A stretch of DNA of 64,000 nt from Saccostrea cucullata (lineage: Eukaryota): the NCBI RefSeq assembly GCF_032062105.1, contig NW_026930161.1:620001-684000 (forward strand), written 5' to 3'. The translations under genes and the position numbers were made by a program. This document shows positions 1,538 through 36,121 of this stretch, one piece after another. The notes beneath the pieces are model-generated. The model saw only the letters and a program-made list of their open reading frames with translations. It was not told the origin of the DNA and did not search any database. Each line of letters opens with the position of its first letter. The first letter of the stretch is position 1.

Positions 1538-19627
<18,090 letters not shown>

Positions 19628-29012: not shown

Positions 29013-30228
29013 TTATGACATAGGGATTTCATGTGCAGCAGCATATCTGCCATATACGTAATGGAAAAGCTGCCTCTCTATGTCTATTAAGAGCGCACTA
29101 GCTCCAAGACGAAAAAGATGAGGAAACAACCATTCATCTCCAAGCTCCTCTTTCATTAGGGAAAGCCATGTGCAAGCATCCTTGGCACTTCTTATTCCCC
29201 CTGCAGGTTTGAATCCAACTTTATGCCCAGTTCGCTGGTAGTATTCCCGAATAGCTCTCACCATGACCAGAGCCACTGGCAAAATGGCATTTACTCCTTC
29301 TTTTCCTGTGGAGGTCTTGATAAAATCTGCTCCTGCCATCATGCACGCCATGCTTGCTTTGTAAACATTAACCATGGAACCTAACTCCCCCGTGGCTAGG
29401 ATGGTCTTCATATGGGCCTCTCCACAAGCCTCTCTCATCAGGCGTACCTCATCATACACACCTTTCCAGTTTCCCTCCAAAGCATACTGACGATTGATGA
29501 CAATGTCAATTTCTTTGGCTCCGTCTGCTACTGCCATTTTGATCTCTTCTAGTCGTGTTTGAAGCGGGACCTGTCCTGTTGGGAATCCTGTTGCTACAGA
29601 GGCTACTGGAATATCAGGACGATTGGCAGCTTTGAGAAACCTGACACAATCAGCTACTCGGTTGGGATACACACACACTGCACCAACTGAAATGCCCTCA
29701 TTTTCCATTTCAACTGCTTTCAAGATGTCCTTCCCCACAGGATTTGCAGCCTTAAAACATAACCTGAAATAAGAACCAAAGGGCAAATTTAATTTCACAG
29801 GGTCAACTTTTATATAGTTTTTAAAATGAAAATAAGAGGTATAACATACAGACACATACAACTGCAAAATGAGCGTATAGTATGCTCTAATGCTCTACAC
29901 CTATTATAGTGACAGTCATCTCAATGGAATAAACATTTACTTGAAGTACCATTGTCAATTACAAGAAGGGTATAGTTAGTGCACTGAACTAAAATCTGGC
30001 AAAACTAAAAATAGAGCACCTTGAAACATTTGATGGAGTATCGTCCCCTGCCAAAGTTGTTAAATCAATGCACGTTACTGCACGTAGCAACCATGCTGCT
30101 TGCCATTGTTTCTTCACTGTTCTGCGAGTTCCTAAGGACTCTGCCCTGCGCTTCACAGCGGGTAAATTGACATAAATATTGTCAAACCAACTTGGATCAA
30201 ACACCTGTCCTGGATTTCTGGCCGACAT
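29013..30228 (-). CDS. DERA: Deoxyribose-phosphate aldolase, 319 aa, 2 coding exons
   Basis: Exons 30020-30228 and 29013-29763 join in frame (..PSNVSR|LCFKA..). Motifs IDLTTLAGDDT, VCVYP, ASVATGFP, GAKEIDIVIN, HMKTILATGEL, GADFIKTSTGK (Schiff-base Lys), GFKPAGGIR, FRLGAS. Confidence 0.96.
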
Positions 30229-33396: not shown

Positions 33397-36121
33397 ATGC
33401 AGACATTTCGGACTCTGAACTTGCTTCGGAAGACTAGTCACACCATTTCACGTCTTTGTCCAGCAAGGTATGTTTCTGCAATCATAATATACAGCGTCAT
33501 CGTTGGTAATTTATAAAATTACGCCTCAGTAGAGTTGAAAAAAAAACCCAGATGATGTAACCAAGTGTTATGTAAAAAGCTATACCTTACAAGCTCCCAC
33601 AACAACAAAATGAAGTCATCAGAAACTTTTTATAGCTCTCATAAATGATCAAATTTCAGTCAAAAGACATGGTGTGATAAAAGAGCTTTCCATCTTGGAA
33701 TGAAAAAGATGACAAATGATGCAGAGATGATAAAACTCAGTGATTCGTGTGTAAAGGTATTAATATGTAAGACAGTGTGACTGTAAGTGAGGGCAGAACC
33801 ATCAAAATAGCTTTTCCTATTTCATTGTTTAAAAACTTTAATGATTAATCCCTGATAAATCAGTCATTCTGAAGGTATTATCAACAGGTTGGGACCACTC
33901 GCCCAAATGGGATATAATAGTCCGTTTGGGATATAATATCCCAAATGGGCTATAAATTTACAGTGCAAAAAATGAAAATTTTTATTTTGGCTATAAATAT
34001 CATAAATCCGCATCAGGACACTTATAAAGGAATAAACTTTTGTTTGACAAGTTTTTCTGCATGTCCATTGTTTAGGAGATTGATCCCTCAGAAGTTCCAT
34101 AACTTCTTGGGGATCAATCTTACAAACTGTAGGGTTGCAGAAAAACTTGCTTACCAAAAGTTATTCCTTTTTAAGTGTCCTGATGCGGATTTATGATATT
34201 TATAGCCAAAATAAAAATTTTAAATTTTTGCACTGTAAATTTATAGCCCATTTGGGATATTATATCCCAAACGGACTATTATATCCCATTTGGGTGAGTG
34301 GTCCCAACCTGATCAATGGTATTGTAATGGTTTGGGCCGTGGATATCGGTGTGGATAGCTCAGTTGGTAGAGCACCTGACTAGAGATGCAGGGGTCCCGG
34401 GTTCATTTCGTCTTTCGCCTTTCCTGTTACAGATTTGGGGCCATTGACCACCCCTGGAATTGCAGGTGAAAGTCCTGCCAGGGGATAATAGAACTTGGGT
34501 TGTGTCTTCCAGGGTGAAGACCATTAATGGAGGGAGGAATGTTATGGTTTGGGCTGTGGATAGCTCAGTTGGTAGAGCACCTGACTGGAGATGCAGGGGT
34601 CCTGGGTTCCATTCCTGGTCCAGCCATACATTTTCTCCTTTCCTGTTACAGTATCACAGAGAGTCTTGGACCTGATATCATTTTAAACCTTTTATATATG
34701 TAATAGCAAAGAAGAAAAAAGGGATCCCTGCATGACACTAGTCAAGTGCTCAACTAACTGAGCTACTCAGGCTGATATCCACAGACAAAATCATTAAATT
34801 CCTCCTTCCTTATATTGTTTTCACTATTGAAGACACAACACAAGTTCTTATTGGCCAAGACACGACTTTCTCCTGCAACTCCAGGAATGGTCAACCACAC
34901 CAAATTTGTACCAAGGAAAGGAAAATTAATGAAATGGTCATGGACCAGACCAGGATTTGAACTGGGCTCCCTGAATCTTAATTGAGATGGTCTACCAACT
35001 GGCCTCTATAGCAAACGATGATCAAACCTGTTTGACCACCACATAAACATGTACTGATTCCAGAACTTTTATCCTTTATTTAGAGATTGAAAGAGATTGC
35101 TGATGAGAACTCTTACTTGAGAGTACTAGTGGATGGTGGGGGCTGCTCAGGATTTCAGTACAAATTTGATATCGAATCAAAAATCCATGATAATGACAAG
35201 TAAGTTGCTACTGTGCACTAGTATTATACTGCTGTCAAAATAGAACTTTTTGACTTTCTTTCAAATGACATAATCATATTTTCAAAAAAATTGCAAATTT
35301 TCTAAGTCCAAGGAGCATAGCTCCGTCCAGAATGGCTCGATCATATCTAAAACTGCACTTGACCTAGATATTCATATGATAAATCTGTATACCAAATTTC
35401 ATTTTAATATGTGCAACCTCTGCAAAGAAAATGCACAGAAACTGCTAAAAATTGGAAATTTTTTAAGTCCAAGGGGCATAACTCTGTCCAAAATGGATCG
35501 ATCGTACCCAAAACATTAGTTGATATTCTTATGATAAATCTGTATACCAAATTTCATTTAAGTATGTGCAACCACTGTCAAGTAAATAAATGGAAACTTG
35601 GTGGACTGGCAGACAGACAGCAGCAAAGCAATATGCTCTCCCTTCTTTGAAAGGGGGGGGGATAAATATCAGCACATAAATTCAATGTAATTATGAAAAC
35701 AATGAAAATTAAACCCCAGGGAAACAGTGATTTCACAGAATTCAAAGAATGTTATTAGTATATTTTAAAAGGATTAGAAACATTTCACAAAAGGCACCAA
35801 GTTCACTAAGCCCTTATTTCCTGACAATTGAAAAAGACCTGGGGCGCTTATGGGGGTAGGGGCGGTTAATAGGGATTATAAGGTTACTGTACGTGTACAT
35901 AATTTGGCATATTCATTCATTTGGATCATTCTTTGATCTTTGTTTTCAGAGTTTATGAAAAAGATGGTGTTAAAATTGCCATTGATAAAGACTCTTTGGA
36001 ATTTCTGAAAGGATCTACCATTGACTATCATGAAGAACTCATTCGGAGTGCATTTAGAGTTATCAATAATCCCCAAGCTGAACAGGGATGTTCTTGTGGT
36101 GTTTCATTTTCAATCAAGTGA
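33397..36121 (+). CDS. ISCA2: Iron-sulfur cluster assembly 2 homolog, mitochondrial, 151 aa
   Basis: Exons 33397-33467, 33660-33756, 35084-35199, 35950-36121, phase-consistent. Arg/Ser/Thr-rich N-terminal presequence; [54 protein letters not shown] contain the three conserved Cys of A-type carriers. Confidence 0.94.
33885..34311. mobile_element. 427-bp foldback MITE (near-perfect palindrome) with 5-bp TSD
   Basis: CAGGTTGGGACCACTC...GAGTGGTCCCAACCTG; arms pair along almost the whole length to a loop near 34100; ATCAA at 33880-33884 and 34312-34316. Explains the mirror-image ORFs 33864..34157(-) and 34135..34383(+). Confidence 0.88.
34323..34650 (+). mobile_element. Terminal-repeat retrotransposon in miniature (TRIM) with tRNA-derived LTRs (Helenus-like)
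   Basis: LTR1 34323-34431 (TGTAA..TTACA) and LTR2 34540-34650 (TGTTA..TTACA); PBS-like TGGGGCCATTGACC from 34436; PPT GGAGGGAGGAA 34529-34539; 4-bp TSD GTAT at 34319-34322 and 34651-34654. Each LTR carries A box TAGCTCAGTTGG and a GGTTC B-box-like sequence. Confidence 0.85.
34699..35030 (-). mobile_element. Degenerate second copy of the tRNA-LTR TRIM, inverted
   Basis: Reverse complements of the A-box region (GTGCTCAACTAACTGAGCTA ~34746-34765; TCTACCAACTG ~34991-35001), PPT (TTCCTCCTTCC ~34799-34809), internal GAAGACACAAC, and PBS (GGTCAACCACACCA ~34889-34902). Confidence 0.7.
35290..35666 (+). mobile_element. Truncated HINE of the 26720 family in ISCA2 intron 3
   Basis: Two AAGTCCAAGG..CATAACTCTGTC units, GACAG tail, hairpin CTCCCTTCTTTGAAAGGGGG. 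Confidence 0.75.

Follow-up and report, generated by a model that had tools for sequence, protein, structure and literature searches.

Structure, decay and family assignment of a Helenus-2_SaGl TRIM insertion with tRNA-like LTRs in an oyster genome, and a candidate Ty3/Gypsy helper

Positions 34323–34650 of the 64,000-nucleotide stretch of Saccostrea cucullata DNA analyzed here (the window; contig NW_026930161.1, positions 620,001 to 684,000) almost certainly hold an old, inactive insertion of Helenus-2_SaGl, a published oyster TRIM family of the Helenus group ("TRIMp3"). The element is not new, the family having been published for oysters in 2024. The one point that this analysis adds to the literature is a Ty3/Gypsy family of the same genome which, judged by its terminal signals, is the best candidate for the helper of these non-autonomous copies.

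The first-pass annotation of the window had described a complete TRIM at this site, with TG..CA LTRs and an exact target site duplication (TSD), GTAT, and both are present in the sequence (Table 1). Its figure of about 110 bp for the LTRs was a good approximation to the exact lengths of 109 nt (LTR1) and 111 nt (LTR2), which together with the internal part of 108 nt give a total of 328 bp by sequence inspection. The word "complete", on the other hand, applies to the structure only, the 5' LTR and the primer binding site (PBS) having degenerated.

Table 1. Features of the Helenus-2_SaGl copy in the window
Feature	Position	Strand	Sequence, basis or remark
5' target site duplication	34319-34322	+	GTAT; identical to 34651-34654
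LTR1 (5' LTR), 109 nt	34323-34431	+	TG..CA, TGTAATGG...CTGTTACA; sequence and LTR alignment
Truncated tRNA-like remnant in LTR1	34349-34404	+	A box 34356-34367, D arm, anticodon arm with 8-nt loop, first 5 nt of B box
Internal part, 108 nt	34432-34539	+	no meaningful ORF; length as in the published Helenus-2_SaGl internal part
Degenerate primer binding site	34436-34451	+	TGGGGCCATTGACCAC; family form TGGTGCCGTTGACCAC, tRNA-His type
Polypurine tract adjoining LTR2	34526-34539	+	AATGGAGGGAGGAA; family form TTTAAGGAGGGAGGAA, unchanged in 21/21 family internal parts
LTR2 (3' LTR), 111 nt	34540-34650	+	TG..CA, TGTTATGG...CTGTTACA; 12 nt missing near 5' end
tRNA-like unit of LTR2	34557-34622	+	A box 34561-34572, B box 34605-34615; Rfam RF00005
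T4 run downstream of the LTR2 unit	34631-34634	+	
3' target site duplication	34651-34654	+	GTAT; identical to 34319-34322

LTR1 and LTR2 align at 91 matching and 5 mismatched positions, with a few indels. The 12 nt absent from LTR2 are CGTGGATATCGG, a loss by slippage between two GTGGATA repeats. From 34405 on, LTR1 has suffered a net loss of 14 nt, so that its B box is halved and neither the 3' acceptor strand nor the T4 run remains; immediately after 34404, reads of other copies part from the window sequence with loose ends. Reads of other copies also end loosely exactly at 34323 and at 34650, their flanks being unrelated to those of the window. LTR1 is followed by GATT and then by the PBS-like TGG that had been placed 4 nt beyond its end and indeed begins at 34436. 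Two substitutions, at 34439 and 34443, distinguish this PBS from all reads covering the element, and its contiguous complementarity to the primer end amounts to 3 nt only (TGG). The polypurine tract (PPT) that had been read directly against LTR2 is found there as the pure purine run GGAGGGAGGAA at 34529-34539, flanked by two substitutions relative to the family form. The window copy diverges from young copies by 12–15%. The ORFs that overlap it (30–82 aa) are mechanical only, most of them relying on alternative start codons and several extending into the flanks. A 5' LTR devoid of B box and T4 run, combined with a mutated PBS, makes the window copy a fossil rather than a working element. The insertion is located in an intron, upstream of an exon at ~35084-35199. 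Another copy lies nearby on the minus strand (34699-35024), with no recognizable TSD at its ends (GGTT vs TATA). Rfam matches to MIR821 and other miRNAs at 33937-34264 fall far under the gathering score and are an artifact of the neighboring foldback repeat.

Assignment to Helenus-2_SaGl rests on the data file of Kojima 2024 (PMC10886601). Four strings of 10–29 nt taken from genomic copies occur exactly in Data S1 of that paper under Helenus-2_SaGl, which is the sole entry there with the 29-nt tRNA-like string; by eye, the LTR of one genomic copy (L020) is the LTR printed for Helenus-2_SaGl. For this family, described from Saccostrea glomerata, Table S1 lists an LTR of 123, an internal part of 108, a total of 354 and a TSD of 4, and Fig. 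S2C places the PBS under tRNA-His-GTG (PMC10886601). Thus, strings, dimensions and PBS type agree with the Kojima 2024 entry, so that both the kind of element and its family were already known, and the name Helenus, mentioned in the first-pass annotation, is borne out. Identity of at least 80% over at least 80% of the length holds indirectly, through the 85–88% match of the window copy to genomic copies whose LTR is the published string.

The features of the group are likewise present in the window copy, which has paired TG..CA repeats, a PPT, a 4-bp TSD, no coding capacity, and a length of 328 bp within the TRIM range (311–1263 bp in total in the Helenus survey; PMC10886601). Boxes A and B occur together within LTR2 and within standard LTRs, LTR1 of the window copy being without box B; a PBS fitting a tRNA 3' end belongs to the family and is degenerate in the window copy. 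The window copy therefore resembles Helenus-2_SaGl in its full-length alignment, via genomic copies, in its tRNA-His PBS type and in its internal length, and differs from it in being 328 rather than 354 bp long, in the 12-nt and net 14-nt losses from its LTRs, and in two PBS and two PPT-flank substitutions.

Searching the genome with the window element returned at least 2002 first-look candidates. Most of the 61 matches that were scored are full-length at 80–88% identity, the best reaching 85–88% over positions 1–328. The standard copy measures 354 bp (123 + 108 + 123), its internal part bearing no signals besides a PBS and a PPT. At no more than one mismatch, the genome contains 463 internal/LTR junctions and 767 LTR 25-mers (reversed controls, 0), two patterns of unequal length from which, as a pair, no estimate of solo LTRs follows. 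Copies end in ..GTTACA, immediately followed by the 4-bp TSD. Exact TSDs of 4 bp, which a given copy would show by chance with a probability of 1/256, flank 15 of 22 two-LTR copies and three of four arrays, and all of them differ from each other; the first-pass annotation had proposed looking for just this combination of constant ends and differing duplications. A-rich or poly-A tails are absent from all 26 loci examined (22 two-LTR copies and 4 arrays).

Each LTR of the window copy had been said to carry an A box, and LTR2 a B box as well; we find the A box, TAGCTCAGTTGG, in both LTRs and the B box, GGTTCCATTCC, in LTR2 only, with one mismatch to the family form. The 26-mer around the A box occurs in the window in two exact instances and once on the minus strand with three mismatches (chance expectation, 0). 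The Rfam tRNA model matches LTR2 at 34.2 bits over model positions 4–67, the gathering score being 29, whereas neither Rfam nor ARAGORN calls a tRNA in the LTR1 remnant. ARAGORN finds no tRNA anywhere in the window because the LTRs present there are too decayed.

The standard LTR of 123 nt is composed of a 26-nt leader, a 73-nt tRNA-derived cloverleaf at 27–99 (A box 34–45, B box 78–88), a T4 run at 104–107, i.e., 4 nt past the cloverleaf, and a 16-nt tail ending in CA. Standard copies score 52–54 bits over the full Rfam model, with a full tRNA cloverleaf. Of the LTRs of 123 nt, 52/53 carry the A box and 50/53 the B box in its family form; the T4 run occurs in 52 of all 54 LTRs and is absent from 20 of 21 internal parts. 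The anticodon loop of the family has an abnormal 8 nt, and Rfam can fit the anticodon arm only with an insert. ARAGORN reports standard copies as "tRNA-???" with a 4-base anticodon, agag or ggag. The warning that the element is easily mistaken for tRNA-Ser genes is thus sound as regards tRNA, given that LTR2 passes the Rfam threshold and that ARAGORN calls standard copies, but not as regards serine, the 4-base anticodon standing in place of that isotype. Neither the window copy nor the standard copies combine the 7-nt anticodon loop, canonical cloverleaf and defined isotype of a functional tRNA gene. Thermodynamic folding yields a cloverleaf for the standard unit, at a stability no greater than that of shuffles, and no clean cloverleaf for the window units; stability no better than that of shuffles is usual for tRNAs and hence uninformative. 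In this genome, Helenus LTRs pass the Rfam tRNA threshold hundreds of times and, if left unmasked, would inflate tRNA counts.

These data bear on several other explanations of the element. A tandem dimer of an ordinary tRNA-derived SINE (SINE2) moved by a LINE would likewise be short, occur in many copies and have a tRNA-like head containing A and B boxes; copies, however, end in TG..CA instead of A-rich or simple-repeat tails, their TSDs are always 4 bp rather than of variable length and flank the two-LTR unit instead of the monomer, and the tRNA-His-matching PBS and the PPT are placed precisely at the borders of the LTRs. We regard such an origin as extremely improbable, and the analysis of TSDs and ends in genomic copies already refutes it. 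Next to no probability attaches to two tandem host tRNA genes or pseudogenes that arose by local duplication and never were a mobile element. The Rfam match above the gathering score on LTR2 speaks for such genes, yet the same boundaries recur, amid differing flanks, in hundreds of dispersed copies, the 8-nt anticodon loop runs across the family, ARAGORN is silent over the window, and LTR1 is without a complete B box or 3' acceptor strand; the copy analysis has already refuted this reading as well. Arrays of 3–5 LTRs with a period of 231 bp do exist in the genome, and LTR-11_DR and Cassandra likewise form arrays, which raises the question of whether the window copy could be a two-unit piece of a satellite-like array (period ~231 bp), cut out by unequal crossing-over, and not a primary insertion. 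This is very unlikely, in our opinion, as the window copy consists of exactly two LTRs with an exact TSD right at its outer ends, and two-LTR units make up 22 of the 26 loci examined; the arrays are themselves flanked by TSDs and thus derive from insertions.

A TRIM insertion being retained, its rank within the family deserves separate consideration. The window copy might belong to a sister subfamily, older than Helenus-2_SaGl and as yet unnamed, or the DNA might come from a different Saccostrea-like species; in both cases the copy would be a new member. Its best matches are only 85–88% identical, its unique flanks occur in no sequencing run examined, and exon reads of a related organism are ~5% different. 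We nevertheless consider a new member unlikely, if deserving of some weight: full-length identity above 80% places the copy in the same family under the 80-80-80 rule, which is the usual family threshold, and the standard copies of this genome have the published LTR string. Moreover, the LTRs of the window copy differ from each other by 5% plus indels, so that age alone can explain its distance from standard copies.

How Helenus-2 copies may have spread can be proposed from their signals. We infer transcription by RNA polymerase III (Pol III), which would initiate at the tRNA-like unit within the 5' LTR. Some transcripts would pass the T4 run of the 5' LTR, cross the internal part and terminate at the corresponding T4 run in the 3' LTR, so that within the LTR R would span ~27–107, U3 1–26 and U5 108–123. 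This scheme presupposes read-through, since Pol III would be expected to terminate at the T4 run within the 5' LTR, short of the internal part. Proteins supplied by an autonomous Ty3/Gypsy element would then package the RNA, and host tRNA-His would prime it at the PBS; plus-strand synthesis would start from the PPT, and the Gypsy integrase would recognize the TGTA..TTACA ends and insert the DNA with a 4-bp duplication. The window copy is now incapable of such a cycle, owing to the losses in its 5' LTR and to a PBS with 3 contiguous nt. In RNA libraries (oligo-dT or metatranscriptomic), family sequence appears on both strands about equally and with no defined starts or ends, and therefore speaks neither for nor against Pol III transcripts. 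All element reads bear the family letters at 34350/51, 34439 and 34443 and thus stem from other copies.

The primer can be named with some precision. A host tRNA-His-GTG gene is present in the same genome, and the family PBS, TGGTGCCGT-T-GACCA, matches its 3' end plus CCA. The comparison with host tRNA 3' ends suggested in the first-pass annotation thus leads to tRNA-His-GTG for the family form. The standard match consists of 9 nt, a 1-nt bulge and 5 nt; the Gypsy element considered next matches tRNA-His better, over 19 nt.

A Gypsy family that shares PBS, PPT and LTR termini with the element, as the first-pass annotation had proposed to look for, does exist in this genome. Its example (G000:C1610:120561-129351) has a pol of 1308 aa in the order PR-RT-RNaseH-integrase and LTRs of ~1227 nt that are 99.76% identical to each other, and is flanked by the TSD TAAG. 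With Helenus-2, and likewise with Helenus-1, this element has in common the tRNA-His PBS, both LTR termini, a TSD of 4 bp and, almost letter for letter, the PPT: the PPT plus LTR start reads TTTAAGGGGGGAGGAATGTAGTGGTTTAG in Gypsy and TTTAAGGAGGGAGGAATGTAATGGTTTGG in Helenus-2, and the LTR end CCGGTTACA and CCTGTTACA, respectively. Among ~8 LTR families with a tRNA-His PBS that were sampled, the GTTACA end is found in this one only. The link comprises ~45 nt of common terminal signals, and no similarity was seen between the internal part of Helenus-2 and the Gypsy element. On this evidence, it is about as likely as not that Helenus-2 (and Helenus-1) copies in this oyster are in fact mobilized by this family.

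At a further locus (L066), a Helenus-1 body is preceded by the final 109 nt of the Gypsy LTR together with the Gypsy PBS. Template switching between two RNAs packaged together would produce such a junction, which may have arisen in that way, by later deletion, or otherwise; a whole Gypsy LTR ahead of the Helenus-1 body is ruled out, as only the last 109 nt are present. In Kojima 2024, animal Helenus elements are tied to Gypsy only by the similarity of their PBS to that of a Gypsy family of another species (PMC10886601). The candidate makes trans-mobilization of animal Helenus testable within one genome and, if it is indeed the helper, would give an animal Pol III-type TRIM a concrete autonomous partner for the first time.

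Known elements provide further points of comparison. Gypsy-39_CGi of Crassostrea gigas was named as sharing the tRNA-His PBS (Kojima 2024, PMC10886601). Its PBS, TGGTGCCGTGACCAGGA.., is also used by the candidate family, and the two are set side by side here by PBS only; the candidate additionally has the PPT and both LTR termini in common with Helenus-2. Cassandra, a plant TRIM of 565–860 bp, resembles Helenus in the promoter and terminator derived from a Pol III gene within its LTRs and in its tandem arrays, and differs in carrying 5S rRNA instead of tRNA; as cited in PMC10886601, its Pol III transcripts, unlike those of Helenus, have been shown experimentally (Kalendar et al. 2008). Helenus-1_SaGl and Helenus-4_CVi have the same PPT as Helenus-2, AAGGAGGGAGGAA, a PBS of the tRNA-His type and ends in ..GTTACA or ..CTACA, and differ from it in the 5' parts of their LTRs, in LTR length (129 and 161 nt) and in internal sequence. 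Helenus-4_CVi also shares the tRNA-like module of Helenus-2, including the leader GTGGATATCGGCCTGGATAGCTCAG.

Judged from shared strings and dimensions, the kind and the family of the window copy, the 328-bp TRIM at 34323-34650, are already known: it belongs to Helenus-2_SaGl. Helenus was defined as TRIMs with tRNA-derived LTRs, the animal families having 4-bp TSDs, and 51 Helenus families come from pteriomorph bivalves, oysters included (Kojima 2024, PMC10886601). Four strings of 10-29 nt from copies in this genome all occur under Helenus-2_SaGl in Data S1 of that paper, which bears out the name Helenus given in the first-pass annotation; within Data S1, the 29-nt tRNA-like string is found solely under this family. 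The LTR printed for Helenus-2_SaGl is, compared by eye, that of L020, a locus of the same genome. The published dimensions (Saccostrea glomerata, Sgl1.0; LTR 123, internal part 108, total 354, TSD 4; Table S1, PMC10886601) are those measured on the standard copies of this genome, and Fig. S2C of the same paper places the PBS under tRNA-His-GTG, beside Gypsy-39_CGi. In the literature searched, no later publication goes beyond PMC10886601.

Features of the window and of the standard Helenus-2 LTR
Feature	Position	Strand	Remark
Protein kinase	3818-4225	minus	open frame, Pfam match 2.9e-10
DeoC/LacD aldolase	29013-29867	minus	open frame, Pfam match 8.4e-22
Foldback or MITE-like repeat	33885-34311		11 bp upstream of window copy
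GTAT flanking duplication	34319-34322 and 34651-34654		both sides of window copy
LTR1	34323-34431		109 nt, starts TG, ends CA
Internal part	34432-34539		108 nt
LTR2	34540-34650		111 nt, starts TG, ends CA
Second Helenus-2-like copy	34699-35024	minus	326 bp; LTR, internal part, LTR
Spliced exon	about 35084-35199	plus	RNA reads of related organism
THADA/DUF2428	44986-45363	minus	open frame, Pfam match 7.4e-13
tRNA-like unit	27-99 of 123-nt LTR
A box	34-45 of 123-nt LTR
B box	78-88 of 123-nt LTR
T4 run	104-107 of 123-nt LTR

Sequence reading of 34100-34900, on which the LTR and internal borders in the table are based, recovered the anatomy proposed in the first pass (TG..CA LTRs, a TGG motif, a purine tract and a GTAT TSD); overall, the first-pass reading of the element finds support. 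GATT followed by TGGGGCCATTGACCAC lies directly 3′ of LTR1, and LTR2 is abutted by GGAGGGAGGAA. By repeat finder and pairwise alignment, the two LTRs form direct repeats in which 91 positions match, 5 are mismatched and a few indels occur. The 26-mer TAGCTCAGTTGGTAGAGCACCTGACT has two exact occurrences, and the opposite strand carries a further one that differs at three bases; the number expected by chance is zero. Between two GTGGATA repeats, LTR2 is 12 nt short; in LTR1, family sequence is gone from 34405 onward, which shortens this LTR by a net 14 nt. The only ORFs overlapping the element are short mechanical ones of 30-82 aa. In public reads of two related organisms, derived from other copies, the match breaks off exactly before 34323 and after 34650, with unrelated flanks beyond; this provides independent support for the element boundaries.

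When the element was searched against the assembly from which the window comes (1.17 Gb, 23,869 contigs), at least 2002 first-look candidates emerged; of the 61 matches that were scored, most span positions 1-328 and are 80-88% identical. Standard copies measure 354 bp (LTR 123, internal part 108, LTR 123). The proposal that copies share the same ends but differ in their 4-bp TSDs held: exact duplications flank 15 of 22 two-LTR copies, no two of them alike, and several others are off by one base. Tandem arrays of 3-5 LTRs with a period of 231 bp are likewise flanked by exact 4-bp duplications in three cases out of four; arrays have been reported for another Helenus family (PMC10886601) and are also known for Cassandra. 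No A-rich or simple-repeat tail was found at any copy examined. Allowing at most one mismatch, the diagnostic internal/LTR junction occurs 463 times and an LTR 25-mer 767 times (reversed controls, 0). The features established for the family are LTR-type ends, TSDs of 4 bp, a PBS that pairs with a host tRNA, a PPT, and conserved A and B boxes with a T4 run. Part of the family is young, since within-copy LTR divergence has a median of 1.2% (range 0-5.7%). The window copy is old, as indicated by an LTR divergence of 5% plus indels and a distance of 12-15% from other copies; it is a fossil whose LTRs have diverged and both carry indels, whose 5′ promoter is broken and whose PBS is mutated.

The tRNA-like sequence noticed earlier inside the LTRs is recognized by the Rfam tRNA model in LTR2 (34557-34622; 34.2 bits versus a gathering score of 29) and, end to end, in standard LTRs (52-54 bits). 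ARAGORN reported no tRNA in the whole window; in standard LTRs, its call is a tRNA whose type it leaves undetermined and whose "anticodon" has four bases (agag or ggag). This implies an 8-nt anticodon loop, and hence a cloverleaf incapable of normal decoding. Among the 53 LTRs of 123 nt, 52 carry the A box and 50 the B box in their family form; the T4 run is found in 52 of all 54 LTRs examined and is absent from 20 of 21 internal parts. LTR1 of the window copy has kept the A box, but half of the B box is gone, as are the 3′ acceptor strand and the T4 run. LTR2 retains the A box, the T4 run (34631-34634) and a B box with a single change.

The sole addition to the already known kind and family is a candidate Gypsy helper. 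A tRNA-His-GTG gene was retrieved from the same genome and confirmed. Its 3′ end plus CCA is complementary to 19 nt of the Gypsy-type PBS and to 3 contiguous nt of the window copy PBS; the standard Helenus-2 PBS pairs over 9 nt and, after a 1-nt bulge, another 5 nt. Genome-wide, 184 occurrences of the full 16-nt PBS string were counted (control, 0), and the 30 contexts retrieved led to about eight LTR-element families and to Helenus-1-type TRIMs. One of these families, a Ty3/Gypsy family, has the LTR end CTTCCGGTTACA, and it is alone in this among the tRNA-His-PBS families sampled in these contexts. The PPT plus LTR start is TTTAAGGGGGGAGGAATGTAGTGGTTTAG in the Gypsy family and TTTAAGGAGGGAGGAATGTAATGGTTTGG in Helenus-2; the LTR ends are CCGGTTACA and CCTGTTACA, respectively. 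Thus, a Gypsy family with matching PBS, PPT and LTR termini, as envisaged in the first pass, exists. Its example, G000:C1610:120561-129351, has LTRs of about 1227 nt with 99.76% identity to each other, the TSD TAAG, a gag-like frame of 335 aa, and a pol of 1308 aa whose protease, RT, RNase H and integrase follow the Ty3/Gypsy order. At least 26 PPT/LTR junctions belong to the family, and similarity among its copies is 94-98%. From about 45 nt of shared signals, we infer that the family is a concrete candidate helper of Helenus-2.

At positions 2045-2620 of locus L066 (G000:C3871:33000-37500), the final 109 nt of a Gypsy LTR, with the spacer and the tRNA-His PBS, lead into a Helenus-1-type body (internal part, LTR, internal part, LTR); upstream of 2045 in this locus, the sequence is unrelated to the Gypsy LTR. 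The joint fits a template switch between co-packaged RNAs, although this single case may have had another origin. In Gypsy-family loci on G000:C10831 (L075-L077) and at L081, the PPT/LTR junction is followed by the LTR and then directly by spacer and PBS, a tandem LTR-internal-LTR-internal arrangement resembling the Helenus arrays. Four loci on various contigs (L032, L034, L051, L058) represent a Helenus-1-type subfamily with a full-length tRNA-His PBS (TGGTGCCGTGACCAGGAT..), unlike published Helenus-1_SaGl, whose internal part has a shortened PBS.

In the model we propose, Pol III would initiate at the tRNA-like unit in the 5′ LTR, partially read through the T4 run there and terminate at the one in the 3′ LTR. 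R would then correspond approximately to LTR positions 27-107, U3 to 1-26 and U5 to 108-123, and Gypsy proteins would package, reverse transcribe and integrate the Helenus-2 RNA. The weak point of the Pol III model is the required terminator read-through. In RNA libraries (oligo-dT or metatranscriptomic), family sequence appears about equally on both strands and no starts or ends stand out; all RNA reads on the window copy carry letters of other copies.

The second Helenus-2-like copy lies tail to tail with the window copy, 48 bp apart and 72-80% identical to it, and has lost the B-box region of its 3′ LTR; no TSD was recognizable at this copy, which is much older than the window copy. At the spliced exon, the loose ends of reads fully agree at both borders, with AG before and GT after. 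Both Helenus copies would thus lie in the intron upstream of it. The exon translates into 38 residues of what we take to be an IscA/HesB-type iron-sulfur assembly protein. The three open frames with Pfam matches are presumably host gene exons. The foldback repeat has arms of 159 nt that are 96% complementary, termini CAGGTTGGGACC.. and ..GGTCCCAACCTG, and a possible 5-bp duplication, ATCAA. An Rfam MIR821 match to it (91.9 bits versus a gathering score of 249) was rejected as a hairpin artefact. In DNA runs from two related organisms, read depth over this repeat is very high.
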